Assembly: GCA_039096225.1 (NCBI GenBank) | Contig: JBBPEB010000034.1 | Span: forward strand, 806,001 to 870,000 | DNA from: Blastocystis sp. Blastoise | Lineage: Eukaryota > Protista > Bigyra: Opalinata | DNA length: 64,000 nt | Direction of reading: 5' to 3' | Shown here: positions 1,725-40,580 of the stretch, in pieces | How positions within the stretch are numbered: the first letter of the stretch is position 1 | Layout: every line of letters starts with the position of its first letter | The notes under the pieces: generated by a model | What the model was told of the DNA's origin: nothing | The model's database searches: none | What the model saw: the letters and a program-made list of their open reading frames with translations, nothing else | Position numbers and translations under genes: made by a program

Positions 1725-2650
1725 CACTTGAATTCAACTATAATGACAATGTAATCCAATATTAATATATTTTAAAAAGTATTTTCTTATATATACAATA
1801 AATAAATACTTTAGAAAATGCTATACTCTATTATAAATAGAATAAATCATAGATAAAAGAGCAAACAAAACTTGCAACTTTTTAGAAGAATCTTCATGAA
1901 AATAAATAAAAAATGATTAGAGAATTGCTAAAAGACCGCGAATATATTTTGTAAATTTTATTTTGTTGAATATGTCTCTTTAAGCAATATATGAGCATTT
2001 AAAATGTTCTTTTAGATCAATTCATGCAGTATAGATTCATATAAAGAAAAGAAAATATGGATATTATTGAAGTTTTGATTTTTTCATTTGATTTTCTTAT
2101 TATTATACTTTTTCAAACCTTGATTTTATGCTCTAAGAATTCAAAAATAATATATAGATATGTTGAAGTGACTCAAATAATGTTTCTATAATGTGAATGA
2201 AGTCATTTTGAGATTAACTTACGAATTATTCAATAATTTTAATTAATATGATTTATATACATGCTTCTCTAGTTTATTTCATAATTAAGAATTGAAATAT
2301 ACCTTAGTTTAACCACATAAAAGCGTATTTTGTGTTATATTTGATATTAAAATATAATAAAATAGTTTATTGACTATAATAGCAATCCTAATATATAAAT
2401 ATTCATTAAAATGAATTATATATACAATATTGACTGATATAAATAGAAAAAACAATCAAACATGAGTTTTTAAAATTGTGAATTCATTTGAGGGATTCAG
2501 TTTACAACTGAAATTGTTTTAATTATTGTTAAGAATTTTATTATTTTCTATTTTTCATTGATATTCAATATTTAACACGTATTTCTTATTTTAAATACAA
2601 ATATCAGATATCTCTGTTATTAAAATAATTAAATAATGTTTGAAGAAGAG

Positions 2651-5600
2651 ATGCAAAAAACAAATTGTCAAGAAAAACAAAGTATTCTTTCTATTCATAC
2701 ATACTAATCATAAATATATAATTTTTAAAGTATTATTTATATTACAGGATGAATCAACAATCACAATTTCAAATTCTCTTCTACAAAAATATCCTAATTT
2801 TATGTTTTCTTTGGTATCTATGAATACTAATGATTTCATAGAAGAATAAAAATCTTATTACATTGATCTTTTATGTTTATCAAAACATAAAATGATCCCA
2901 TTTATGGAGAATGCAAAAGTTCTTGATATTCTGCCTTTAAAAGATGTAGTTTCAATTCATTCAGATATACATTATTTTTTTGGAGATGAATCCTATGAAG
3001 ATAAGATGAAAATATATACATTTCTTTGGGATTCTTTAAATAATTTTATTGTGAATAATAAATGTGAACTGTATTTTATTTTATAAATATTTATAGAATA
3101 AATAAAAGTGATGAAATGAAAATAATAAGATATCAACTCATTATTCATGGTATATTTATTTCATTTTATTATTATTATATATATGAATGTATAGATATCA
3201 TAACAAATGAGAGAAATCAATTATTTTATCAATATTCTCCATTATTTGATTTCTTTAATATTACAATTGTTACTTTAAAATATATAGTATTAGATTATTA
3301 AAGCCATTAATTATATATATAGTTGATTTCTCTGAAGATATTCCTTATGAATATATATATTCTTCCAATTTACATGAAGTATTCCCAAAACTAGAAACAT
3401 TTCTTATAGAACGTATATTATATATTGTTTTATTTACATATATATTTGAATTTATTTTATATAGCTTCCTATTATTCTCAAAGAAAAGAGATATGTATAC
3501 CTCCTTCTGATCCTTATTATACTGTATTATATAAAGAATATAAACGACAATATTATCAAACTTATTTTCCAAAAGAATATTCTATTTATAGAAAATCAAG
3601 AACAGATAAAGAAAACAATTATATACATAACAATTTAATTCATATATATTCAAAAGAAAAGAAAAAAAAATTTGAATAAGAAAGAAAATGATATTTCTGA
3701 CAAAAATATAGATATAGATAAAGAAATAAATGAAGAAAACAATGAAATAAAACCAGATCTATTTGTTATACTTTCATGCTATTCCCGTGATTATAATACA
3801 TAACAAATGGAGTTCGAGAAGAATAATTTATTATTATATAATAATAAATATATTTCTTATATGAAATTTATTTTTATCCAAGATGGAGGTATATATATAT
3901 ATTATATATATTTATATATATAGAACGAGATATACAACATCTAATTGTCGAGTATATAATCATATTTTATTGTTTTTGTACTCTATACAATTGAATAAAT
4001 TATTTTATTATTAGAATATATTTATAATATATAAATATGAATAGGCTATCGTTTTCTTCGTGTTCAACAATACTCTTCTATTTACTTCATCTTCCAATAA
4101 TGAAGCACACTAAACAACTAGTCACTCTTCGTATGTATATAATAACTAAATATATATATATTAGAGAATCCTAGAGTGAAGATTCAATTCGATATTCCTC
4201 CATTATTAATAACAATTAGAGATGGATTAGTAGATACTATTATTATATTCAACATATTCAATTGTAATATATATAATCTATAATACTTATTATTATTATT
4301 ATATAGTTATTCAACCAGGATCATATCCTGAATATATACAATTATTTAAAGATATTATTACTACTCATGTATTTCCTAATGTAACTACATTAAAAATAAC
4401 ATGTATATATTTAATATATTTCAATATATTATATAAATAATATTTATAGATTATTCCTATGATTTATATATACCTCTTTTACAAGTGATATTGCAATTAA
4501 TAACAAGAAATCATTTTCCAAAGTTGCATATATATGATATCAGTGATATTATTCAAAATGATACTTATATATATAAAGAGAATTATAAATTTGTTCTATT
4601 TTCTGAATCTATAATACAACTAATGGATACTATAATTTATGATAAAGATATATTTTCTGATATCTTAGAGAATGTTGTGGTGTATCCAGAAATATCAGAA
4701 GCTATATTGAATACTAATAATACTAATTATTTTACTATTCAAGGTATACATAAATGGTATTATGAATTATTATTATACTATATATATATAGGTTCATTTT
4801 TTTTAAATGAATATGATGTTGTGTGGAATTAGTTAATGAATTCTAAAGTTATATTCTTTAATAATCTAATTATTGATTGTACATATATATATTATATCAT
4901 TATTATTATTATTTCTATATTCTTTTAGTATATGAGATGAAATATACTAGATTTGATATTTCTCAAATAAATCTAAAAAAGTGTATAGTTAAATCATTTG
5001 TTCTTAGTATATATATATTTGTATATATCTATTTAATATAATAGATGCGAATTCATTTCAGTATAAGATATTAAATAAATTGAGGAATTGCATGAAAGAT
5101 ATAAATTATAATGAGCTTCAAACACTTTTTATTAACTGTATTTGTTTTTTTTTTATTTTCTATTTATTCTATTTATTATTCGAATTAATTATGTAATTTT
5201 TAGTAAATCCAGATGAAGATGAAGAGTATGAATATGATAGTGATTATGATTATGATGAAGATGATAGTCACGATGAAAATGAAAATATTAATGTGAATCA
5301 ATATATTTATGAATATTTCTCATTTTTATCTGTTGGAAACTATAAAAACGTGACTACTTTGTCAATAGGTATGATTATGTATATATCTTTATATCTATAT
5401 ATATAGATGATATAACGTTCTATTCTATTCATGGTTATATAAAAAACAAAATAAAAGTTGAAACCATACAAATGTTATATCATTTCTTCTCCTTGTTCTC
5501 TAATAATCTTACTAGAATAGAATTAACTTGTATATCAATTTAAATATTATATATATACAAATAGATTGTTTCTTTGTATCCTATATATTCAATGATTGCT

Positions 5601-21876: not shown

Positions 21877-23409
21877 GACTCACTTTCAACTAAAATGATA
21901 AAATAATAATATACTCTTATGCTTAAAAGATACCTTTTATACGAATAATTAATAAATACTTCGAAATATGTTGTAATTAGCAACATATATGATGATTCAT
22001 TGAGATAAGCAAAGCATAAAACTTGCAACTTTTTTTGAATATTTTTCCTGAAAATAAACGAAAAATGAACTATTTTCATAAAAATATCCATGATTCTTTT
22101 TCAGTCATTTTTAATCTTTTTCTATAATTTTTTTCAGAAACAACTCATTATTCATTATTTACATCATATTATTAATTATTTTTGAAAATAAAAATTCAAT
22201 ATATGCTCATATTCAAGTATTGAATGTATATCTACATGACACTATCAAAAAGAGTTCTAATTCTATTCTTTAAATTATCAAAATAGAGTAAATTCTTATC
22301 GGCGATATCAAAATAATATTGTTAGATATAGCAAATATCAAATAGCTACAAATTATTTATTCTGTAACTCAAATTGAGATAGATGATCACACTTTCATCT
22401 TTATCTATTCATTTAAATGTCTTTAAAAGTCAAATTATGAATCTGTGTTTATGAAAAAGATACTACTAGATCTGAATTCTTCTATTCTAAAATGAAATCA
22501 CATTAAAATAATATACTTTCTTCAATAAACTTCTTATGATGTTCAAAATTATTGCTACTTATGTCTATCAAAGTTACAATCATTTTAAGCATTATTCAAG
22601 CATAAATTATTATATTTTAATTGAACTATATGAGAATTAATATTTTTTCTTTATACTTTTATTAAATAAAATATCATTAAGTGTACTTATTATATATTTA
22701 AATATAAATAACATGAAAAAATGAACTAACCATTATTCTTTATATTTTATTTTTATTAAAAATTTTCTATAACAATTCATATTAAAGTATTCTTAATATT
22801 TTACTATATTTTTATTGTTTCCATTTCTTATATATATATATCCATCAAATCTATTGACTATTCTATGATTATCAATATGATTTATAAATAAAACTATATT
22901 CTTCATATTATCATAATAAAAATGAAACTCTTAACTAGTTGAACTATCACTAAATAATTTATTAAGTATTATTCTGTTTGTAATATAATCATATAATCAT
23001 TTTTTTTATCTAGTTGCATATATATATCCATTCCCATATTATTTAATAATATTTTCCTTAATCATTATCATAATAATACATAAGAAAAAAATGTTTTTTT
23101 GACATTAAAAAGTCTCTCATAGTATTTATATATATATTATACATAATCCTAAGTTTCATTATAATAAGTTTTGAATAAACAAGAGAAGCTTTACATAAAA
23201 ATGTTCTAAAAATATTTTACACTGAATATTATCAATGATTAACTTTTTAAAAACAAAACTCACGCATAATATTATTAAATAAATAAATGCAGAAATAAAT
23301 ACTAATACAATAAATATATAATAAAAATATATATAGATAATCAAAAATATATAAACACATAAAAATTTAAAACAAAAAATAAACAATTAAAATTTAATAA
23401 ACATAAGAA

Positions 23410-26400
23410 TTACACAGATTTTAATACTTGAGTATACTCATTAATAAGAATATCATCAAACATATCTTCCATTTTTTGTCGAGTAGCACTACTAGTACCA
23501 TTACTTTGAGAATCTACTAAAAAGTCTTCATCAAATATATAATTATTACCTTCAACTCTTCTACCATCAAAAACATTATTATCAATTTCTTCTCTTAATT
23601 TATTAGCACTTAATAATATTTTATTACTTTTAATAGGCATAAAATGTACTTTAACATTACGTTTAACAATAATATCACATATTTTATGATACTGTTCATT
23701 CAAATCAATTCCATTAAAGGGATATACTAATTTACATTTTGGTAATAAATTATGCATAGGATCTCCACCACACAATAATAATACATGAGTATAACCAGGG
23801 AATTTATCAATTTCTTTTAATGCTTCTATTAAACCACCATTCACGTCTTTACAATTTGAACAACAACCATTACAAAAACCATTTCCTGTTCTTTTTTTAT
23901 TATTTAAAAAGTCATCAGAGAAATCATTTGGTTTACTCATTCCACTTGAAAGAATTGATAATTGATCATCATAATTACTATATTGAACAACTTGATAACG
24001 AATAGAAGCATTATTCTTTCCCAAAATTTCATTACGTCTTTCATCTAATTTCTTTAATACATTGCCAAAGAATTGTTTTGTACTATCATAATACTGATGT
24101 TGATTACCAGATGTGCATATAACAATAGATACAACTAAATTTGTAGGTGATTTTATATCTCTCCTTTCACATTCTTCTGTCTTTATATCTTGATCTGTAA
24201 AAGAAGACATATCTACTTTAGTATAATAATCAGGTATTTGTTCATTACTAAGATCAGCTGCATGAGATTCATTAGTTTCATTCAAATAATCATCAAAACT
24301 AAGTGACCAAATAACTGCATTACTTATCCAACGAGCAGTACCATCACTTGACCAATCACTATATAACTTACTAGCTGCTGTATCTATTACTATTCTACCA
24401 TAATTCTGATATGCATCTTTTATCATTACAGCAGCATGACCATTTTGTTCTCTTGCAAATGTTTTAAAACCACAATTTACTAATTCATCTTCATCAATAT
24501 TTGCTAATGTTACACCTTCAAATATTTTATTTAAACCATAATTAATAGGTAATCTACATTCTTTATTAAACAAATCTTCACCAATAGGAACAAATTGACC
24601 ATAACCTGGATCTTTATCATCATCTACTTTATCTATCTTCTTCTCATAAATCCAACCACGTCCTTCTATCTTCTCTTCAGTATCACATAACTCACTTATA
24701 TGATAAGGACCATCTTCATAATTAAAGAATTTACAAGCTTCAAAATCTAATGGAGAATTCTCTAACATAAACATAATACCACCACCATGAGCATGGAATA
24801 TATGTAAACATTTTATAAAACTATTCAAATAATTAAAATCACCTTGATGCTCTGGATCTCCTAAAACACCATCACCAGGACTACATGTAATAACTACACT
24901 TCTATATTTACCTGATCTTAATCGATCCATAGCATCAAAATAATCATATACTATATCTACTCTAAATCCTTTAACTTTTAATTTAGCTACAGGTCCTTTC
25001 TTTAAATTATCAACAGTAACATCAGGATCAACTTGATTTCCTTCTTCATCTATATTATTAGGTCTAGCAGTATATAAAACAACAAATAATACATTAAATT
25101 GATCAAAAGCACCATCTCTACCTAAATCATCACTTGAATTATCACCATTTTCATCATCATCTACTCCATCACCATTATTATTCTTCTTATTAGAATTCAT
25201 ATTTAAAAACTTAGCACGTCGTTGATATTCACCAAATACATCAATAACCTTCTTTATATCTGCTGGATGGAAAACATCATTGAATTTATTTTTTAATAAA
25301 TTTTCATAATATATAGTATCACACATATAATTACATATAGTATTAGGATTAGTAGTAGGTGTATGCATATTCTCTAAAGCAGTAGGAAGTTGATGTATAT
25401 CACTACACCATATAAAAGAAGGGAAAATATTCTCATAATCTACTATACTATATCCAATACCTATTCCTATAAAAGAAGTTTCACTACTTATAATTACATT
25501 CTTAATTTCTTTACGAGCTATTTCACAAGAAATACCATCAGTAAATACAAATTCCATACTTGAATAAGGACGACTATTACATACAGAAGTAGCTTGCTTT
25601 ATTACTTGATCTATACATGTAGAAGGAGTAGGAGAAGAGAAATGTTGGAATAAAGAAGAAAGAATTGTATATGTCCAGATTTCATAAGATTGTAAACCTG
25701 TTCCAATACAATAACATTTATCTTTTGCTATCCATATATCAACAGCTGATACAGATAATTCACTTAAACATCTTATAAATAATAATATAGTATGAATTGA
25801 ATGACGAATACTTAATATATTAAAAGAAGAACATTTACAATCTATTATTATACTAATAGAATAAGCACGAATCTTACCTCCTGACTTCTTCTTAAATAAT
25901 TTACCATTACCTGTTTTAGTAATTAAGAAATTAATATAATTTCTTAAATGAATTGATGTACCTGTAACAGAAGCAATCCAAGAAGTAGCTTTATTTGGAG
26001 GAAGAACACAATTATTCGTAGAATCATATAATAATTCCTTACTTATAATACTACTCATTTGATTTAATATTAATGTATTTCCTCCATTAGGAACATGTTC
26101 TAAATCTGTTTGAGCAACAGAAGGAAGAATAATAGTTTCTCCTGTTTTTTGGAATAAGCTAACTACATAAGGTATATCATAACATTTGTCAAGTTCTGAT
26201 AAACGAGATATTGTATTATCTTTTGTATCTTCTAGAGGAATAGATAATATAGATAATATATCTATTACTTTAGGTTTTACACTGTTTTTACCTGGATATA
26301 CTACTTCTAATTTATCTATATTTGATTCAAGTAATTCAGATGAATAAAACATATTTAACAATGAGTTAGCAAGAGGTTGAGAACATAAAGAAGCTATCTT

Positions 26401-29400
26401 TGATACATTCATCATATTCTCTTTAAAATTTTTCTTTAATTGATTATTCATTTCATTCAAAAGTACTTCAGGAAGACTTTCATCTTGTATTAAGCCATCA
26501 GATTGTATATGGAATAAAAATAAATGCTGAAGATTTGTTGTAAAGAAACTAGTAATTTCTGGTCGTTCACTTAATAATTGTTCAGAATAACCATCAGATA
26601 ATATAAAGAATGATTGAGTTTTAAGATCTTTGGATGGCTTTTCAAAAGCAAATAAATCTAATGGTGTTGAAGGTATCTTTTCTACTGTTTCTAAATCATA
26701 AATAATAGAAATCTTTTCATATAAATTATCTTTTGTTGGTATTAATTTAAATGCTTGTGAACGACCTCCTGTACAATATAGAGAAGTTGGTATACCTAAA
26801 CAATCACAAATAAGTAATAATAAACAACCTATTGTACTTCGTAATCTAGCTTTATTCACTTTATGACTTACATTCACATCAAATATCAAGTTCACTCGAG
26901 GAATATATTTATTCTCTCTCTTTTCACTCCTACGTATACTATTCACATAATATGATAATATACCTTTATAATTAACCAATATAAAATCTATAAGATTTTG
27001 ATTTCTATTAATAGCTTCTATATTAATTTGTTTCAAACGATCTTCATTTGATGATGTTATTTTAACTAAATCTAATATATTCTTTCGAGACATTACATCT
27101 TTAAATAAATTAGATAAAGACATAGATCTAAACTCTTGTAAAATCTTTTTAATATCATTTCTTTTAATTTCAAATTGTTTACGATCTTCTTCTTGTTTTT
27201 GTTGTTCTTCAGGATTTAAATCAGCATCTATAGAAATCACATGTGTAGCAGCTGACGCTATATTCTTAGCTTGATGTAAGATATCTTCAATATCATTTGG
27301 ATTAATATTACCCCCACTAATCACAGGATTTGAAGACTTTGGTTGTGAATCTGATTTAGAATCTGTTACCTTCTTTTCATATTTAAATTCTTTTGTATAT
27401 CTATTTAAAATATTCTCTATCGAAGAAGATTCATTCATTTGATAAATAGAATCTTTACAATTAAACCATACTAATTTATATGTATTATTAAATACACATA
27501 AACTCTTTTCAGCATAATAATAAATAGTTGAGAAATAAGTATCTTTATGACTTACTATATACTTTAATAAAGTATATATCTTATTTATATCATCACTATG
27601 AGTAGAGTCAAATAAACAATAAGGAGATTGTTGAATAGCATATACATATCGAGCAATATTCTTATCATTGAAATTCTTTAATAATGAACTACAAGTAGAT
27701 TCTAATTGAATACTTTGGGTTATTCTATTATCTTCTGCTTTTGGTTCTTCAAATATATTTATAATACCATTAGAATCAATGTAAAACTCATTATATCGAC
27801 AATTTATATTCATATTATAACGAATTAGATATTTAGTATTAAATACATATCTATTCTCTTTATTTCCTGAACGATAATAAAAAGTCTTACCATTCATAAT
27901 AAACGATATACTTGAACCAGCTACATTAAAGAACTTTGATCCATCTTTATAACATTCACAAGAACAATTCTCTTTTGTATATAAATATGAAATTTGACGT
28001 TCTACTGGAGCAATACAATTAATAACCGTATCTTTATGTTGTTTGCTTCTATTATCTTGATCTATATATTGAACACGTAAGACTAATGTGAACTCAAGTT
28101 TATCTTTTTTATCTATATCATATTCATCAGAAAATTGTATTTTTATTCCAGAAGAAACATTTTCAATAAGAATTAAATCATTATCACATTTACATATATA
28201 TTCATATTTCATAGGATTTAGTATAGGTATTAATAATGTTGGCTTATTATATGAATAAACATAAGTAGGTAAACGTAAAACATTATTATTATTCTCACTA
28301 GCTACAATTATTTGAGGAACAGATTCTAAAGATAATATATTAATACAATTCTCAAATTTTGGACTCTTTGTATATTTTAAGTAGTTCTCAGATCGTTTAT
28401 CAATATTATCTTTATTTACAAATACACGAGAACTTAATAAATGCTTATTTGTAGCATTAATAGTTTCTTCTATTGTTTTAAGTTCTTTTTCTTTTTCAAG
28501 CTTAGTTTTATATTTCGCATCATATTCCTTTACAATATTATTAATACGAATACTTATGTCTCGAAGATTCCTTACATACCTATCATCATTACTTAAATTA
28601 GGTACAGTATATGTATTTAATATATTTATTTCATCTGCATCTGTATAATATAAATCTTCTTTATTATAATGTCTACCTTTATCAGAATTCAAATAAGAAT
28701 AATCATTAGCTTGAGGTTCAGGATCCATAGAATAACAAGGTATTTCTACAGATTTACAATCAGATCTAAAGTAAAAAGGTAATGTACAACAAGAAGAAGT
28801 AAAAGAAATATCATAACGATCATTAATATCATTAGTTGTATCATATTTATAAAGCAGAATAGTATTTTCTTTTCGTTCACTAAAATCAGAATAAGATTGT
28901 TCACGATACAATAATGTTTTTTCAATAACAGGAAATTGTTCAATTCTAAATGATTTAGAAATATTATATAATACATGGCTTTCTTTCATTATATTACATA
29001 AAGAATCTAAGAGATAATTACATAATAATAATTGTTCATCTTCGAAAGAATCATGTCTAAATAAATCAGGAAGACTAACATAACGATATTCAATAGTTAC
29101 ATCATTCTCAATTCTATTTCTATTAATAATAACATTATAAGTAGAGAATGGAAGAGGAATAAATGAAGAATACATAGTCTTCTCTGATGATGGTTTTGAT
29201 TCAATTTTAAGTGAATGAGGTTCAAAAGTAATTGGTGCACGTTCTCCTTGATTATTAACTAATTGAAATTCAATAGAAATATCTCTACAAGTAGAAGGAT
29301 ATGTAATAAAAGCTACTTTAATAAATTGATTAGAAATAGGCTTTTCCTTTAAGAAATAACGAGATGAACGACTATCAATTAATTCTTGAACATTTTCTTG

Positions 29401-32400
29401 TAATTCTTTTGGTATGAAATAGCGTATAGTATTAATAGAATTAATAAATGCATTCCAACTATAATGATATAATTGTGTTACATACCATGATCGTATACTC
29501 TGTTTCTTCAAAATAAATTCTTTATTAATATCATATTTCTTATTAATATCTATTAAAACTAAAGGAATATTACTATCAAATTGATTTACATTTTGATCAT
29601 ATTGAGATTTCAAATCAGCACATTCAACATTCATATTTTGTAATTTTTCATTTATTTTATTATTATCATCATATAAAGTATCTAATTTGCCAGTTTTTTG
29701 TTCTAATTCTTCTATTTTATTAAATATATCATTAATTGAAGTTTTTCCTGAATCAGACATACTTTCAATAGCATCTTTAGCAAAATCTGAATAGGAACTA
29801 CGAACAAGAATTTCAATTAATAATGTAGACACAGGTGTATAGAATGCAGGGAATAATAATTGATATTTATCACGAATATTTAATTTAGAATCAATAATAT
29901 ATTGATCAAACGGTTCTATCTTTTTATTAATCATATTCTTTAATATTCCATAATAAATGCGTAAATCATTTGATGGAATTATCATATTATGATGATGATG
30001 ATGATGCAAGAATCGAATATAATTATTTTTATTAATAGTACACTTATCATTTATATCTAATTCACATTGAATACTATAATCTTTTGGTAATGATTTAATA
30101 GAATTAAAACAATCAATATTCAATAAATCATTTTTAGAAGGATCAATATAACTTATTAATTCATATGGATAAGATAATATAAGAACAGGATAATAATTAT
30201 AAAGTTGAACTTGTATACTCATTGTACTAAATAATGTTTTAAATAGTTCTTCAATTGTTGATATATCTGATATTTCTGTATTCGTAATACCATATAAACC
30301 ATAATGGCAACAATTCAATAATGCAATACGTAATTGTTCAACCTTGACTTCTTTATGAATATATAAATCCTTTGTATGAATTATTTCTAATAATTGTGGA
30401 GATAAAATAATATATTGTGCATAACCACAATATATATTCATAAAGAAATTAATAATTATTTTAATATCTTTAATGCAATCAGTAATAAATAATATATTCT
30501 TAGCAATATCTTCAATCTTCATATTTATATAAGGTAATATTTCAGGTGTATTCATAAGAATAGGAACAGGATTCAATTTCGCTCGATTTATATCAACCAT
30601 AAAATGACTTAATCGTATATATTCCTTATAATAATTCATTGTAATTCTCTTATAGTCTACAGGTATATCTATTGATTTCTCAGTATTCATTAATAAATCT
30701 CTTTTCTTTTCTAAATCAGGATCATCTTTTGAAATAGATTGTTTAATTGATTCTTGCATACTTTTTGGTACACTATTAATAACATCATCAAGTAAAGAAT
30801 CACCTGTATCCATATATGAATTTTTTATCCTACGAATCTCTTCAAATTTATTGTGAACTTTTTCTATTTCTTCATCTAATTCTTTAAATATAGGTAAATA
30901 TTTTTTAATCTCATTTTGTTGAATAAAAAGATTATTATTAACTCGAAGAGAGACCTCGAATCGTTTACTTGCTGTTGAATTATCTTTAGTAACCTCTTGA
31001 TAATAACCATCTAATTCTTCACATTTATTCTTTATATCAAATAATTCTTTTAAAAATAAATCTATATTCTCATCAGCAACTTCTTCAAGCTTTAAATCTA
31101 AAGCTTCTAAAACATTATGAAATTCTTGAAAAGATATTGTAGAAAGAAAACTATCATATTTACCAGTAACATAAGCAAAATAAAAACGATCAATCTCATT
31201 AGATATTTCAAAATAATCAAATGGATTAGAAGAAGAAAAATATGTATTTATGGTTTTATTAATAGGTATAGACATAATTGGCTCATAATATTTATCACTA
31301 AATCTTAACCATCTTAATAAAAATTTATATTCTTCTGCATGTGCAGATAAAATAAAAGGATCAAAACCAAATTTATTATATACATGATTATATATATAAT
31401 TAAGTGGATAATATAATATACTACGTATCCATAATCGTAAAGAATTCTTTATTATTTGTATATCTTCATTTGAAAAGATATGAATATTTTGTTTAAGACA
31501 TTCTACAATCAATGGACCAAATTTCTTTTCATTCTCAGGAGTATAACTATTTTGAATCATATTAATAAAGTCATTTTTAAATTCATTATCCATTTCTATA
31601 TTCTTAAGTTGTCTATCTCTTGGATTATATTGTAAAGAATTTGAAAATTCAATTGCGCTAATAGCTTCAATAGATTCATCTGAATTTAATATACGAATTA
31701 ATTTTCTTGTTGATAATCCTTTTATTTCACTATTATTATTATCTATACTTTTAGGAATATAATTACCAATTGGTTTATTAAAATTATTATCTAAATCACA
31801 TAATTCACATATATTTTTATATGTAGATAATGATTCTGCATATAATAATATACATCTACTTTGAAGAGGTGCAGGTATAGATACAATGGAATTTGATGAT
31901 AAGGTTAATATAATACGGAAATCAGGATGTATATATTTAACACATTCATTATTACTATCAGAATCTTTAGAATTTGATTTAACTTTATATAATAAAGGAT
32001 TTATTATATTTTCAATAACATTTAATGTAGGTTGTTCTTCTAAAAGTGAATTCAAACGTTCTAAAATATCTCCTGAAGCAAATTGAATACCATCAATATT
32101 AATCCAATAACCTTTTTCCATAGCTGTTAATAAAGGTCCTTCTCGGAATACTAAAGTACTATTCTTATTATTATCTGAGATATTATTATTATTATTATTA
32201 TTATCAATATCAATAGTATTGTCTTCTTCTTCTTCTAGATTACTACGCTCCATTCTACCAATAAGAATCGATGAATCACTTTCATTATTAAGAGGAACAA
32301 TAAGTAATTTCTTACCCATTATTTTAGCCATATTTGTAAGTACATGTGTTTTTCCTGAAGGAGATGGACCATAAATTAATATACCTCGTTTACTATAATA

Positions 32401-35400
32401 AGCAATAGATAATTGAGATAATAATCTCATTTCTGAATTTGTTAATAAAAGAGATGGAAATCTATCAATACATTCTATAGAAGTAATAAATGTACTTTCT
32501 AATTGTAAATAGCTTTTATTATTTTTTTTATCTTCATAAATAGAATGTTGAATAATATCTGATAAATTTAAACCAAGTGATTTCTCAAGAGATTCACGAT
32601 CTTCAGGTAAATATTTACATATAATAGAAATCCATAAAGCTTCTTCTATAAAAATAGGATTCTTACTAATCTCTACTGATTGATATATCATTGATTTAGC
32701 CTTTAATATATCACGAAATGAAAAATTGATACGTGTTTCCTTACTTTTATTAATCGCATTAGAAACTAATGAATTTATATGTGACTTTAAATATTCTTTA
32801 TAACTAACAATATCAGTATTACTATTTTTAGATATTTTTTTATCATCATTATATTTATTTAAATATTCATTGGTATATATATCTTTAATACATTTATTAA
32901 AAATCTTATTACTTAATCTTGTTAGTTCATGAGATTCAAAGTCTAGATTACGGAAATAAAAACTCTTATCAATAATAGATTTTGGTAAAATACAACGACT
33001 ATTCGATATAACAGCAGGATTCTCACAAATAATTATTAATAATCGTGGTAATTCAATTTCTATATCTCCTGGAATATGAAAACTACCTCTTTTACTAGCT
33101 TGTGTAATTAAAGTAGATATAGTATCTAATAATTCAGGAGAAGCAACATTTAATTCATCTAATAATAATCCTATTGTATATTCACCTTTATATAATCTAT
33201 ATTTCTTATTATTCTTATATTTATCAATAATATTTGAATTATCAGGATCGAATATATAATAGCCTTTATCATCTTTAGTTTTACATTTATCTTTACCTTT
33301 TAATAAGAAACTTAATTTACTATCTTTAAATTTAACACTTCCTTCACTAACATTAGGAGATATAGAACCAAATACATTTCCAATATCTATATTTCGAGAA
33401 AAATTTTGGCGAATATAAGGAATATTTAACTCTTCAAATATACGAATAGCTAAATCAGATTTACCAATACCTGGTGCTCCTTCTAATATTATTGAACAAT
33501 AATCAGTTTTCAATTCTTTATTATCAATTATCTTTTTAATGTCTTGAGTATTTTCTGTTTCAAGTGAATTTGTATTAGAACTAGAATTAGAATTCGATTT
33601 ATTACTCTCTTTAGAACATACTATCTCTTTTACTAATAATAATGAAATAATCATATGTATTGTTGTAATAGATAAACATAAATAATTGTTACTATCAATA
33701 TCACGTATTCCCTCTATTTTCTGTTTAAATCTTTCATGATTAGAATCCTCTTTAAATATTTTGTTAGTCAAACCTAATAATTTATTCTCATCATTATAGT
33801 CTATTGTTTGAGGATAAGTGAATAATTCCTTCATATCATCACTACATTGACATGTTTTCAATAATTCACATCTTTCCTTTTCTGTACCTGAAATATATTT
33901 TAAATAAAAATAAGCATCTATTTCATTAAAAAAAAGATGAGAAACAGCATTAAATTTATTTTTGAATATTAAAGATTCTTTTTCTAATAATTTATTATTA
34001 TTATTATTATCATTATGAGATAAATTATAATCAGAACAAGGTAAATAAATAAAATAATTATGAAGATCTATTCCACCAAAATTATCTTTTTCAATAGTAG
34101 CAACAAATCGACAATTCTGAAGATTTACTTGATATCCTCTATCAGATTCATGTAATAAGAAAGAATAGCCACTTAAATAACTATCAAATAAAGAATTTAA
34201 TCGAGGAATAACATTATCATTCAATAATTCAAAATGATTTAATAATAAAGCTTTCTCTTTAAATATACCTAAAGTAATTTGACCAGGTTTAAAAATCATA
34301 CTTGTATCTGGTTTTTCTGATAAACATCGTTCAATATCGTTAATCCAGTCTTTTAATGCTTTATATTTATCATCTCCTGAATGAATATTAATATTTAATT
34401 TTGTAATTTCTGCTTTTATTCTTTCATATAATGATTGAATATCTTTCTTACTATAAATAGTAGATAATCCAATTAAATAATCACATTCTAAAGATCTTGA
34501 TAATTCAATAGTATCCATATTATTCTTTAGTATATCAATAAATTGATCTTTTGATTCAGATCCACCAATAAGAATAGGAGGAATTGTACTTAAACTTTGA
34601 AGAATATAATAACGAAATAAAGTATCATAACACCATTGACAAGTAGATAAATTAATTCTATCAGGAATATCTACTTCAAAAATAGAATTTGTTAATTTAT
34701 TTTGTTTTGTTACTTGACCAATTTCATAATTTACAAATTTCATAATTTTCTTTTTCATATCTTCAATTTCAATATCTGGAGGTTTATAATCATCATTATG
34801 TGTTTTTAAACAATGAGTAGCAATAGCAATTAAAAATATAGAATTCATATGTAGAAAAGAAGAAGGTTGATATAAACATACAATACCAGCCATATATTCA
34901 TTAGATTGATCAAAAGAGACATTACGACAATAACGTTGATAGATTTCATAATATATTAACAACTGTTGAATGGAAATAGATTCATAACGATATAATCGAC
35001 ATAAAAGAGGATGATGAAGAATTAATTCTATTTCTGATTGTGTATATAAATCTACATATACTCTTTGAATATAAGAAGGTAAATCATGATGAATCTTATT
35101 TTGTTGATAAGATTTAAATACATATATTAATCTGAAATTACTAGAAATAGGATATTCTTTACCTAAATAAACAACAGATGTTGCTAAAGGATCAATAAAT
35201 TGTTGAATAGATTCAATTAATTCTTCAGATAAATAATGAGCATTCTCTAATATTAATATAGTTCCTTCTTTTTTTTCTAAAGCTTCTAATAAAGGTCCTT
35301 GTTTAAATCTTGCACCTTGAGAAGCTGATTCTTTTGAAGAACTTGAAGAAAATGTATAACTACCTATTAATTGACTTATATCTGTATCTGGAGTTAAGAA

Positions 35401-38400
35401 AATTGTTTTATGATGTTCTATTAATCCAGTATTCTTTAGTACATTCAAAAGAAGATGTGTTTTACCTGTAGATTTCAATCCAATTAAACTAGTTGTTCTA
35501 TGTTCACAAATAGAACTAAATAATTCATTATATTTATCACAACGAGTAGAAGGAACATAATTATCTAATATTGATAAATGTTTACCTTTTGAAGTACAAT
35601 AATCTTTAATTAATTGTTCTTTCTGTTCAAATGATAATTCACACATTTCATATATGAAATCTAAGCTAATATAATATTTCTTCTTATCAAAAAATTTAGA
35701 TTGAGAATCGATGAATTGTTTCATATTTATATATAAATTCTTTTCATTTTCATCATTTATATTCTCAATTACACTTGTAGAAATATTATTAAAATAATCT
35801 TTTGGCTCTTTATATAAAGTAGAACACTTTTCATTAAGCATATCATCACTAATACATAAATGTATAAATCGATTGTTAAGAGCAGGAGAGAAATGATTAA
35901 GATCATTAACAGAACAAGTAGCAATAATACGGAATAATGGATCTACAATAAGATCTCCATTACATTGTCGTTCATCAAAACGAACACTACTAGGCTCAAT
36001 CTTATCATTACTATCATTTAATACATGATATTCTACTTCTAATAAATTATTTAATCTTTCAAAAGAATTAGAATTCATTAATCCTATATTTTGTATAACA
36101 CATATATCACCTTCATCAGCAGCTTTTAATAATTCTGAATCTACCCATTGAGGTATATATTCGTGGCTATTAATATCTTCTTCTAATTTAGAAGAACCAA
36201 TTAAATTTCCAGCTGTAATACCTTTAGAACAATATAAAGTTCTATATACACTAGAATAACGTAATTTAATATCATTATTATTGTTATTGATTTCACCATA
36301 TATTTGTTGACGATGATATAAGAATGCATATACATATTTACGAGCAACATATTCATCAGAGGCACATACTATTACATGACTACCACTATTTAAAGCAATA
36401 TCTAATTGTTTACCTATATATTGGAATACAATAGGATCTAAAGGTTCACCAGGATAATCTAAGCCTCTTTTAGCATCACTGAATCCATCTGAATTCTTTG
36501 ATCTTGTAGATTGATCTTGTTGAAGAAGTTGTTCCATTAATTGTTTACGATTAAATCCTTGTGTATAATGAGTATTATATACTATTGGCCATATATCATT
36601 ATAATCAATTCTTAATTTCATCATAGAAATAGCTCTATTAGCATCTCGAATTGTATAATACTTATTAATAATTCGTTTTCCAGTATCAAGAACAGCTTCA
36701 TTATGTATTTGTAATAATTGACTTTCAAATTCATCATTTCCAATATTCTTTTTCTCAATAAATTGTTGAATTTCTTTTGGAGATATAGGAGGAAATACTT
36801 CTTCATTTAATACTCTGAAATAACCACGAATATCTGTATTTAAACTATCTCTTTTATATTCAGATCCAGCAGGATTTTGTGTAGCTATAATACGGAAATA
36901 AGGATTCATTTCTCTTATTTCATATTGTTCCATATTATCAATAAAGATTTGTTTAGAATCTAAGAAAGATAAGATTGATTGAACAATAGATTGAGGAGCT
37001 AAAGACAATTCATCTAATAATAATATACCACCATAAATAAATGCTTCTGTAAAAGCACCAGATTTAAATACAAGAACATGATGTTTATTATTTGTTTGTA
37101 AAGTAATTTCACCAATTAAATCTTCAGGAGAAGAAGTTTGAGAGAAATTATAACGAATGACACGAATACCACTTCTTTTACTTACATATTCTACACTATA
37201 AGTTTTACCACAAGATGTAGGTCCTTCAATTAATAATGGAATATTATGTTGAATAGCTTGTTCAATATGAGAAACACGTTGTTCAGATTCAGGAGTTGAA
37301 ATAAATGTATTCTTTCGACTCATAAGATTAATAGATCGATAAGGATGTATAGTATAAGAGTGATCTTTTATAATATAATTTAATGTATTTTCTATGGAAT
37401 GAACAATCACATAATCAGCAGTAATTCTTAATAGACCTATTTCTTCTATAAATACACTTAATCCTTTATAATGAGGTTCTTTCTTTTCATTTTCATCACT
37501 AGTATAATGAATAGGATCGTTAGGACGAATACAGAAGAAATTAATAGTTTGATTATCTAGATAATTCATATCTAATTCTATATTTTTAAGTAAAGGAAGA
37601 TAGAAATAAACTTCATTTTCAGTTGATTGATAACTAAAATTAATATAATCACCAAGAGATAATGTATCTAATCCATTATATAAAGAACAAGGAAGAGATA
37701 GAATAGAAGTACATTTATCATTATTTTGAGTTGATGGTTTCTCATGTAATGTATGTAATATAAGGTTATTAGGAGTAATAAGTGCAGGAGATTGAGTATT
37801 TAAATCAAAAGCAAGATAGCAAGGTGCATAAGGGGTATATCCATAAGGAGAAGGATGATTTTCTTTAGTAGAGAAATACGAAGAAGGATCTGCAAGAGTA
37901 TGAGGTATAGTATTATCTATATATATATAGATATATAGTAAGTAATAATTTGAATAATGAAATTTATATTACATTAATTAATTATATATATATACGAAAC
38001 TTATATTCTAGTTTTTCAAAGGATTCAAGATTAGATTCATCATATATTAATTTATTACCATTAAACTATATAGATAATATATAATTATATATATATATTT
38101 ATAGAGAATAAATATACAGAGAAACGTTGTAGTTCTTCAGGAGTAGCATGATTATTAATATATTTTTTATATAAATAAGTAAAGAATTGTAGATATTCTT
38201 GATTTTTCATATCCAGTTCTTCACAATTAATAGAAAAACTCTGTAATGAAATAAGTTTAGTATAGAGTTCAGCAAGACTGAAAAACTCACATAATTCATC
38301 CTTATAACAAGATACTATATATTATATATATATAGGTATATATAGAGATATATATACCTTTTAGACACATTTTAGAAGGAGTAATAACTAAAGTATTATC

Positions 38401-40580
38401 TTTATAGAAACAAGTATATTCAAGACTATTCACAGAACGATCTATATTTTATGTTTATTATATTTATTATATTTATATTTATTATAATTATTATATTTTA
38501 TACCATCAATAATGATTTCTGTGACTGTAGAAAGATAATCCTGTTGAAATAATGAAATATCAGCAAAATGATTCGAAACATCATGAAGATCAACTATATA
38601 TATATATAATGATAATGATAATAATAACAAAATAATTACAGTAGAGACAAATATTGATATTATTCTTTATTAATTCAGAATATTCTTCATCTGATGATAA
38701 ATTCATATTATTCTCAAAAAACTTATCTTCAGAAATACCTATAGAAATATAAATATATATAAATATAACAATAATTGTATTTACTTTACAAATATCTATT
38801 TATTAAATAATAACTTATATATATACTACGTTTAATGATAAACTTTTGTTTACAAAAAACATCAGGAGCCTTTTTTAACTATATATAAATAAAGAATATT
38901 AAATTATTTAGTTATATATATATATACATTAAGAACAGAAATATATAATTCTTTAATTTGATTTTGCCTAATAGAATCAATGTTTTCAGGAGTAAGTTCA
39001 TTATTATTATATAGAACATAAATAGGATCACCATATTGTTTCTATTATTTATATTAATCAAATAAACATTTTATATATATATACTTTTAAGAAATCTATG
39101 AATGTTTTATAATAATAATATTTTGTAAAATTTTCGTATATAGTGATTTTACGAGTATTTAAGTCATTAATATAAATAGTTTTGGGGGACTTTTTCTATA
39201 TATATATATATATAATACTACAAATATATACAGATAAATAATCAGTAATTTGTTGTTTTAAAGAATCAATATTGTTTCTATATATATAGTATAGTATAAT
39301 AAATAGAATTTAATATTATATATATACTTAACATCTTCTTCGAATTTATCTGCTATATATATTATAGTATTACTATTATTGAGAAGAATAAATAAAAAAG
39401 AAAACTTATAAATCAAATAGAAATATATATATATATACAATTAACATGAAAACCAAGATTATTTAAATAAGTATTAAGATTATTATTCTTTATATAATCT
39501 ATAATCTTATTCTTAGAATATTTTTTATTTAATGTTTTTTGAATAGTCTCTTCACTATATTCTTGTAATAATGAATTCATTTCATTTTCTATAGTTTTCA
39601 TATTATTGTTCATACATAATTTAATTAATATTATTTCAAGACTCTCCTGGTTTTTCAAGCATTCTTTAACTATTTCAATTTTAGTATTTTCTTTTTTATC
39701 TGAATTATCCACAGGAGATACTATATATATTAATATATAAACAATAAGTTACTATTTATATATATATATTTACATTGAGAATCTTTAGAAGGATTCTTAT
39801 TTGAAGAAGAAGGAGTAGAATTATTCTATATATACTTATAATAGTATAGACACATTATACATAATAATTATTCTATATATATATTTATAATAGTATAGAC
39901 ACATTATACATAATAATTATAATATATATATACTTATAATAGTATAGACACATTAAACATAATAATTATAATATATATAACACTTTATTATTTTAAAGAA
40001 AATCTTTATATATATATACGTCAAAAAGTAATATAAAGAATTATTGATAATATTTTGGAATATATTTAGAAGCAATGTTATCATAGTAAGCAATTTGTAC
40101 ATTAATAGTATATCCTGTTGAAAGAGATGTATTCTAAAGGAAAACAAAAGATAATAATAATATAAATGAAATACATATCAATTCTATAGATAAATTAATA
40201 TATACATTTGTATCATTTTTATTTGGTTCTGAATTTAATTTCATTGGATAAAAATCTTTCATCTTTGGAAATGTCTCAAGAAAACTTTCTTCAGATATAT
40301 CTAAGACAACACAAACATCATTGTTCATTTGTATTATTTTTTCAACACTAGAATCTTTGTTGATCACTTCTTGGTCTCCTTTATAAAGTGTATAATCAAT
40401 ATTATTGTCTTCATGTTTCCATTCCTATAATAAATATTATTATAATGTATATGAATGAATTACTATGCATCTGTGTAAGAATTCTGTAGCTGTTTCATTA
40501 AAATTTATTTCTCTCAATGCACATTTTCTTTTAATTATCTTATTATCACAAGAGAATCGATATCTCACTTGAGCACTCAT
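23410..40580 (-). CDS. Giant midasin(MDN1/Rea1)-derived AAA+ ATPase: 2 ubiquitin-like domains, 6 AAA modules, 3 VWA-type domains; 16 exons, ~5,350 aa
   Basis: Walker A motifs GPTSCGKT (~37201-37224), GLKSTGKT (~35458-35481), GAPGIGKS (~33457-33480) and GPSPSGKT (~32347-32370). Walker B LLLDE occurs twice. FRIIATQNP-type sensor strands recur six times. Pre-MIDAS motif TGTSIHLRNYINFL..KLFKKK..RAYSISIIID resembles midasin. The frame stays open upstream of the ORF's ATG to the acceptor at 37917-37918, and 15 upstream exons splice in consistent phase back to ATG 40580. Confidence 0.85.
39826..39980. repeat. Three ~50-bp tandem copies (ttataatagtatagacacatta[t/a]acataataattat..) inside an intron of the giant gene
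   Basis: Directly visible triple repeat next to the acceptor at 39826-39827. Confidence 0.85.

Follow-up and report, generated by a model that had tools for sequence, protein, structure and literature searches.

The window analyzed here is a 64,000-nucleotide stretch of the Blastocystis sp. Blastoise genome (contig C26:806001-870000), and this report concerns one very large gene on its minus strand, at window positions 23410 to 40580. The gene is predicted to encode a soluble protein of ~5,300 residues, in which no transmembrane-like hydrophobic segment was found. We place it in an uncharacterized family of single-chain ATPases with six AAA_5 modules, which by analogy would act as midasin-style, force-generating remodelers. 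The domain order is a variable N-terminus, AAA1 to AAA6, a linker, a von Willebrand factor A (VWA) domain resembling a metal ion-dependent adhesion site (MIDAS) domain, a second VWA domain of the midasin/NorD type, a domain like class I glutamine amidotransferases (GATase1-like), and a third, VWA_4/Ku-like VWA domain. From sequence comparison, the family appears to be a sister lineage of midasin (Rea1/MDN1), forming a separate branch of the midasin-type hexa-AAA lineage and not an ortholog of it. We give this explanation as a whole a probability of roughly 60%.

Most of the protein is encoded by a single giant terminal exon. Its stop-free open reading frame of 4,719 codons spans 23410-37569, and the frame remains open upstream to about 37916-37968 (open frame of 4,852 aa). 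The start codon lies at 40580, at the head of a 5' block encoding the variable N-terminal region of ~500-640 residues with its putative ubiquitin-like segments. The 5' exons were mapped by tblastn with the annotated paralog proteins P0001 (5,355 aa) and P0002 (5,369 aa), these annotations being the sole basis for the mapping, and the block was also subjected to guided GT-AG exon modeling. Since the GT-AG model recovers 11 exons and tblastn sees two more, the block is put at ~11-13 exons. Coordinates of all features are collected in Table 1.

Table 1. Features of the gene at window positions 23410-40580; all lie on the minus strand.
Feature	Window positions	Residues	Remarks
5' exon block	37917-40580		~11-13 small exons; tblastn with P0001 and P0002
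5' exons, GT-AG model, first five	40464-40580, 40146-40424, 39774-39825, 39446-39720, 39085-39195		
5' exons, GT-AG model, further five	38928-39041, 38815-38878, 38640-38783, 38504-38593, 38126-38314		
Two extra 5' exons	~38359-38442, 37994-38065		tblastn only, missed by the GT-AG model
Terminal giant exon	23410-37916		4,719-codon open reading frame; ATG 37569, stop codon 23410-23412
AAA1	36430-37389	Pfam AAA_5 at 111-244	Walker A GPTSCGKT 37201-37224; Walker B LLLDE 37003-37023
AAA2	35590-36429		Degenerate, without P-loop; invariant FSPALxNRF kept
AAA3	34690-35589		Walker A STGKT 35458-35478; Walker B with one acidic residue, ILEN 35242-35259
AAA4	33610-34689	961-1320	Degenerate, without P-loop
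AAA5	32500-33609		Walker A GAPGIGKS 33457-33480; Walker B LLLDE 33148-33168; best match midasin AAA5
AAA6	31390-32499		Walker A SPSGKT 32347-32370; altered Walker B NIDG 32089-32106
Linker	27010-31389	2061-3520	~1,450-1,460 residues, between AAA6 and D1
D1, VWA nearest MDN1 MIDAS	26329-27000	3524-3747	
D2, midasin/NorD-type VWA	25366-26025	3849-4068	Conserved N-terminal extension PNKAT..GT...FKKK
D3, GATase1-like (ThuA/GIFT/OST48-type)	24280-25101	4157-4430	
D4, C-terminal VWA-like	23413-24144	4476-4719	Cysteine cluster CNGCCSNC 23851-23874

A first-pass annotation of this DNA, made from the sequence alone, had described six tandem AAA modules with a characteristic distribution of Walker motifs, and both observations were borne out. 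Pfam AAA_5 was detected in five stretches (E 1.9e-47). The sixth module, AAA4, was missed by Pfam and was seen by profile-profile comparison only, matching its sister modules at ~95% probability and midasin AAA6 at 89% (hhalign). All six are of the dynein/MoxR type. Nucleotide sites are complete in AAA1 and AAA5, are reduced to Walker A in AAA3 and AAA6, and are dead in AAA2 and AAA4. The 12 family members in which we checked this pattern came from both this genome and human-type Blastocystis, and reach down to ~27% identity. AAA1 and AAA5 always carry GK[ST] and hhhhDE, AAA3 and AAA6 keep the P-loop with one or zero acidic Walker B residues, and a P-loop is never present in AAA2 and AAA4. Because it is kept across these members, the pattern is not due to chance. 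AAA1 and AAA5 are predicted to be the hydrolytic modules. AAA2 and AAA6, each of which comes directly after a module with a complete site, share an invariant RF/SRC-type motif that AAA3 and AAA4 lack; its Arg is a candidate arginine finger.

The closest solved relative of the ring is midasin (6or5, E 5.6e-60), as compared with ~1e-8 for CbbQ/NorQ, and midasin is also the best match in the PDB and in sequence databases outside the gene family. With six AAA_5-type modules that by match scores are closer to midasin than to bacterial MoxR-type proteins, the gene falls within a broadly drawn midasin-type class of single-chain hexa-AAA_5 proteins. Modules of the two rings were compared in a 6x6 profile-profile matrix, in which the odd modules of midasin resemble each other and the even modules do likewise. 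This odd/even alternation is kept in the present gene. The best matches were AAA1 to midasin AAA3, AAA2 to AAA4, AAA3 to AAA1, AAA4 to AAA6 (weak) and AAA5 to AAA5, with AAA6 tied between midasin AAA5 and AAA6, so that AAA5 gives the sole diagonal match. As the correspondence is not one-to-one, we prefer a separate branch over the repurposed midasin paralog that had been proposed earlier; the accompanying description of a giant, non-canonical, midasin-related AAA+/VWA chain stands.

A separate, canonical MDN1 was looked for in the genome and was found on contig C34 (166070-187250, plus strand) as an intron-split gene, the first part of which is locus L016. Its ring matches are collinear with yeast midasin, with up to 63% identity (AAA3), and its C-terminal MIDAS domain (186186-187248) is 58% identical to that of yeast (E 2.6e-38). 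Since canonical MDN1 is encoded separately, the present gene is not the midasin of ribosome biogenesis. The first-pass annotation had named the lack of any other MDN1 in the genome among the grounds for rejecting its reading, and that ground falls away. The two proteins share an overall plan in which a single polypeptide carries six tandem AAA_5 modules alternating between two types, then a long linker, and then VWA/MIDAS-type domains at the C-terminus. D2 has the midasin-type extension preceding the MIDAS fold, and D1 is structurally nearest to the human MDN1 MIDAS domain. The conserved sites of midasin are those of AAA2-AAA5, whereas complete sites are found here in AAA1 and AAA5 only. Midasin has a single MIDAS domain, in contrast to the three VWA domains and one GATase1-like domain of the present protein, whose DxSxS motif is not intact in this copy. 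Unlike midasin, the present gene is multi-copy and lacks a D/E-rich tether, and its N-terminus and linker are unrelated to those of midasin in sequence.

Searches of the C-terminal 1,200 residues, of the linker and of D3 against the PDB by sequence profile returned nothing significant, and Pfam had no match in the C-terminal half of this copy. Residues 3520-4719 were modeled with AlphaFold2 from an alignment of eight paralogs. In this model all three VWA-like domains that had been noted at first reading adopt the VWA fold. D1 superposes on the human MDN1 MIDAS domain (8ql1_A) with Z 16.7 and a root-mean-square deviation (rmsd) of 3.4 over 208 aligned residues (model m84f30caa6fd0), and hhalign gives 51% probability to the midasin MIDAS alignment over the whole domain. 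D1 carries three motifs conserved in the family, a DxNx[S/T] site, a PSTPLD loop and SDGxSEQL; judged by sequence, the D1 site is a conserved MIDAS variant and not a decayed one. D2 matches CMG2, TRAP, NorD and Rea1 MIDAS at Z 15-18 (15.6-15.8 for Rea1 MIDAS and NorD). Its N-terminal extension and first strand-helix-strand align with midasin MIDAS by hhalign at 94.4% (E 8.8e-8), and by both hhalign and structure D2 belongs to the AAA-partnered (midasin/NorD) type of VWA domain. D4 matches the Ku vWA domain (8s82_K) at Z 12.5, and its equivalent in the Tritrichomonas musculus homolog P0034 is recognized by Pfam as VWA_4 (1.5e-12). The motifs that had been quoted for the three domains were found where stated, at 26866-26895, 25825-25860 and 24106-24135. 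An intact MIDAS site (DxSxS...T...D) is present in none of the three in this copy, as had been claimed: the site reads DVNVS, DCKCS and ICTSG in D1, D2 and D4, respectively. DCKCS is the form of the D2 site in this subfamily, and metamonad homologs have an intact DxSxS at this position.

The domain between D2 and D4, first described as Rossmann-like, is real and specifically has a GATase1-like fold. Remodeling of D3 with 39 homologs gave a predicted local distance difference test (pLDDT) score of 87.4 and a predicted template modeling score of 0.87 (model mc124cf8f427d). The best structural matches were the site-1 protease C-domain (8uw8_A, Z 16.1), ThuA (1t0b_A, Z 15.9), the IFT52 GIFT domain (5fms_A, Z 15.3), OST48 (Z 15.0) and STM3548 (Z 14.9), each with ~200 residues aligned and rmsd of 3.0-3.4. 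Foldseek matched the IFT52 N-domain (E 3.4e-5), and the Atlas rows were ThuA, ABC_transp_aux and IFT52_GIFT. No catalytic Cys-His-Glu triad was found in D3, and the 39-sequence alignment contains zero conserved Cys or His. The nucleophile-elbow position appears to read MLEN, and D3 is predicted to be non-catalytic. Because neither Cys nor His is conserved, we infer that D3 serves as a binding platform. In its fold and in the absence of a Cys nucleophile, D3 resembles the non-catalytic GATase1-like domains of ThuA, IFT52/GldG GIFT, OST48, STM3548/DUF1355 and site-1 protease (Z 14-16 over ~200 residues). It differs from them in having no sequence-level Pfam or PDB match and in its placement between the VWA domains of a giant ATPase. 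Some small proteins of 350-560 aa from metagenomes and Physarum polycephalum (P0136, P0150, P0111 and P0156) share the C-terminal half of D3, joined there to an N-terminal ubiquitin or to a WWE domain. This hints that the domain type works with ubiquitin or ADP-ribose signaling in other eukaryotes.

The linker between the ring and the head had no match in Pfam and no sequence match in the PDB. There is no acidic tether, the maximum D+E content being 23 per 100 residues, in agreement with the first reading of the sequence. The N-terminal region is poorly conserved between subfamilies and is short in the human-type Blastocystis homologs. Two ubiquitin-like domains had been proposed here, and they find weak support without being confirmed. 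In the paralog P0004, Pfam ubiquitin scores 30.1 bits summed over weak stretches of the first 700 residues, and residues 1-130 alone give 18.4 bits. Language-model look-alikes of P0002 residues 1-92 are almost all beta-grasp domains (Rad60-SLD, ubiquitin), at scores of 0.84-0.89, below the 0.9 mark. Comparison of the putative segments with ubiquitin alignments by hhalign, from very shallow alignments, was negative, and Pfam found nothing in the N-termini of P0001 and P0002. A predicted complex of the N-terminal 92 residues of P0002 with its own D1/D2 and Mg scored 0.11 against a mark of 0.34, which speaks neither for nor against binding. Ubiquitin-like domains at the N-terminus are thus plausible but unproven. 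The leucine-rich-repeat-like stretch also suggested for this region was not recovered, with no Pfam match to such repeats. Low-complexity insertions typical of an AT-rich genome are present in the protein, namely a run of six His in the linker (29989-30006) and poly-Asn runs within the AAA5 and AAA6 inserts.

Six-frame searches of the genome found 15 full-length copies of the gene on ten contigs, with open frames of 4,429-5,515 codons. A further copy is truncated, and shorter relatives or fragments number at least nine. The family totals ~250 kb, or ~0.75% of the 33-Mb genome. A young subfamily comprises the present gene and copies on contigs C25, C30, C16 and C8 (two copies), which are 81-96% identical; other subfamilies are 27-45% identical. 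The paralog loci were compared over 10 kb each, that is, as half-genes. The synonymous divergence (dS) along one young gene pair forms a mosaic, and since it swings between 0.006 and 0.33 within that pair, gene conversion is indicated. The ratio of nonsynonymous to synonymous divergence (dN/dS, Nei-Gojobori method, NG86) in D2-D3 is 0.14-0.19 against copy L002 and 0.3-0.75 against the other two copies, making D2-D3 the most constrained part of the gene among young copies. Most other windows lie at 0.5-1.7, and two windows of low dS give 2.7 and 4.6, values to be read in light of the tendency of NG86 to overestimate dN/dS in AT-rich genomes. The N-terminal exons are just 28-50% identical between copies that are ~90% identical elsewhere.

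The duplicated unit extends from ~80 bp upstream of the ATG, where 5' homology to the C8 paralog L005 ends, to at least 860 bp past the stop codon. The 860 bp following the stop (window 22548-23410) match the flanking DNA on the 3' side of the C30 and C16 paralogs at ~95% identity, so the duplications take in a long 3' flank. Some 390 kb away on the same contig lies L015 (C26:439400-449399), a copy from this gene's own subfamily that has suffered an internal deletion. Identity is 96% over its last 1,260 codons and the 3' flank, after which the match jumps to the equivalents of window positions 30718-31096 (80%) and 40194-40365 (69%). With an open frame of only 1,417 aa, L015 is probably a pseudogene remnant. 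Five shorter relatives carry the D1-D2 module (C13:831205-834072, C16:17411-19039, C22:14854-16473, C21:1115968-1117587 and C13:891652-893253), and P0018 (2,746 aa, C13) has the whole C-terminal module. No Pfam AAA match was found in P0018 or these five, and they may be AAA-less members of the family or truncated copies. Several of the shorter relatives lie within ~20 kb of a contig start.

Outside this genome, a profile of the C-terminal 1,200 residues retrieved 995 representatives at E<=1e-3 from 1.84 billion proteins. Named homologs are giant proteins of T. musculus and T. foetus (several in each), Kipferlia, Chilomastix, Dysnectes and Aduncisulcus; B. hominis ST7 and many metagenome fragments were also found. 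Their annotations read "hypothetical" or "AAA+ ATPase domain-containing" throughout. Human-type Blastocystis contributes one named protein and two metagenome clusters, and paralog expansions are seen in Tritrichomonas as well. Some parabasalid homologs of 6,000-6,200 aa, such as P0186 from T. musculus and P0212 from a metagenome, add a protein kinase domain to the ring and the VWA/GATase1-like head. No paper on the gene family was found. The locus had been put forward as the best candidate in the window for an undescribed system; no paper describing it was found, but the gene is not a single odd gene, given its 15 full-length copies, and its homologs were already deposited as hypothetical proteins. 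In a quick maximum-likelihood tree of D2-D3, unrooted and with long branches, all Blastocystis sequences form one clade (SH-aLRT 100), with the human-type sequences nested beside the P0004 subfamily. The nearest neighbor of this clade, as its sister group, is one T. musculus pair (95), and the other parabasalid group stands apart. Old paralogy followed by losses would fit this placement, and so would transfer among anaerobes.

By analogy to midasin and to MoxR/NorQ-VWA pairs, the six modules would fold into one ring, and ATP turnover at AAA1 and AAA5 would drive movements of the ring and linker. The head, composed of three VWA domains and the GATase1-like platform, could then grip a protein ligand, allowing the machine to pull a component out of a larger assembly or to remodel the assembly. 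The fast-diverging and possibly ubiquitin-like N-terminal region may set the target or the regulation of each paralog. Several observations weigh against this explanation. The six modules are not collinear with midasin AAA1-6, AAA1 being most similar to midasin AAA3, and no similarity to midasin was found in the sequence of the linker and N-terminus. The model of the C-terminal 1,200 residues is of moderate confidence, with a mean pLDDT of 57.7 and values of 50-88 for the domains. As all three VWA domains lack a canonical DxSxS, metal-mediated ligand capture in the style of midasin may not apply. Finally, dN/dS near 1 in many windows of the young copies could reflect relaxed constraint on some of them.

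An alternative that we regard as unlikely is an intracellular conflict or immune-type role for the family, or its carriage as cargo of a selfish element. Its expansion and diversification would then reflect the recognition of invaders such as viruses or endosymbionts; the variable N-terminus or the VWA head would be the sensor, and the AAA ring would be the effector. The number of copies and fragments and their spread over ten contigs are consistent with such a role, as are the mosaic divergence attributed to gene conversion, dN/dS of about 1 or above in many windows, the divergence of N-termini between otherwise similar copies, and the paralog expansions in Tritrichomonas. The position of the Blastocystis clade beside one parabasalid subgroup is compatible with transfer between gut anaerobes. 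A further lead is the name of Pfam bpMoxR, a weak match here, which refers to bacterial MoxR-vWA ternary systems predicted to be conflict systems. However, the dN/dS values are biased upward by the NG86 method in extremely AT-rich genomes, the duplicated unit consists of the gene and 3' flank only (transposon hallmarks were not examined), and matches are far fewer in human-type Blastocystis. No effector-type domain (nuclease, protease, TIR or pore) was found in this copy. The defense role suggested in the first-pass annotation likewise received no direct support: the PADLOC models gave one weak, generic P-loop match (mad8, 20 bits) and NCBIfam gave generic AAA only, leaving copy number, fast evolution and gene conversion as indirect hints.

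A bolder form of this idea, which we hold to be more doubtful still, would make the family a hitherto unrecognized intracellular machine, diversifying rapidly, with which anaerobic gut protists carry out surveillance or conflict. In this view the bacterial MoxR-vWA systems have here a single-chain counterpart in eukaryotes, exchanged between Parabasalia and Blastocystis. The tortoise lineage would have expanded it to 15 copies undergoing gene conversion, and the variable N-terminus and VWA head would confer specificity.

It is highly improbable that most copies are decaying or functionless products of recent segmental duplication and that the family serves no role in this genome at present. 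Such decay would account for the many windows with dN/dS close to 1, for the internal deletion in at least one copy (L015, at C26:440 kb) and for the several short fragments. Against it stand the 15 copies whose frames run uninterrupted for 4,400-5,500 codons, when a random stretch of this genome would contain a stop roughly once per dozen codons, the retention of Walker and D1-D3 motifs between subfamilies that are 27% identical and across to metamonads, and the low dN/dS of D2-D3 against L002. The proposal that the gene is the organism's own MDN1/Rea1 ortholog, made very divergent by extreme AT bias, draws on midasin being the best match outside the family and on the automatic UniRef name "Midasin" of the Kipferlia homolog, but is effectively refuted by the collinear MDN1 on C34 (~166-187 kb) with its yeast-like MIDAS domain, and by the 15 copies, missing D/E-rich tether, extra domains and non-collinear module matches of the present family.

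The preferred explanation, a separate branch of midasin-type ATPases, can be compared with other AAA systems. MoxR-family AAA+ proteins with VWA partners (NorQ-NorD, CbbQ-CbbO, CobS-CobT, BchI-BchD and GvpN) belong to the same AAA clade, and weak matches to CbbQ, NorQ, CobS, GvpN and BchD were obtained. Both follow the principle of an AAA ring paired with a VWA adaptor, and D2 superposes on the NorD VWA domain at Z 15.8. The MoxR-type proteins differ in forming homo-hexamers of ~270-380-residue subunits with the VWA domain on a separate protein, whereas the present chain of ~5,300 residues, from a eukaryote, unites six diverged modules with the VWA domains. VWA8 and RNF213 are conceptually similar as multi-AAA, single-chain rings in which some sites are active, and VWA8 has a C-terminal VWA domain; we take this resemblance as a lead. 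They differ from the present family in size, in the three-VWA-plus-GATase1 head and in taxonomic range. Neither was among the sequence or structure matches, and no search was aimed at either.

The textbook examples of a single chain forming a ring of six AAA modules are dynein and midasin. The present family looks like a further single-chain hexa-AAA lineage, set apart by which of its sites are active and by the makeup of its head, and is common to Blastocystis, the commonest eukaryote of the human gut, and to trichomonads and their relatives. It offers a natural comparison for the coupling of ring, linker and MIDAS domain in midasin-type motors. The family has expanded, shows gene conversion and is patchily distributed among anaerobes, and one may ask which large assembly or invader these protists would need so many motors for.

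The locus had been said to sit among genes of the ubiquitin system. None were seen around it, and the long neighboring open reading frames give TLDc, TMEM18 and WW domains. The genome analyzed here comprises 33.3 Mb in 34 contigs with a GC content of about 20-21%, and the nearest database proteins are labeled "Blastocystis sp. Blastoise". The Blastocystis isolate Rus-B, from a Russian tortoise, has a genome of 33.3 Mb in 33 scaffolds with 23.1% GC, and the paper describing it makes no mention of midasin, AAA or VWA proteins (PMC12129017). In the genome analyzed here, locus L017 (C17:505527-511865) encodes a dynein heavy chain of the cytoplasmic type, with DHC_N1, DHC_N2, AAA_6, AAA_5 and AAA_lid domains, in an organism that has no flagellum.

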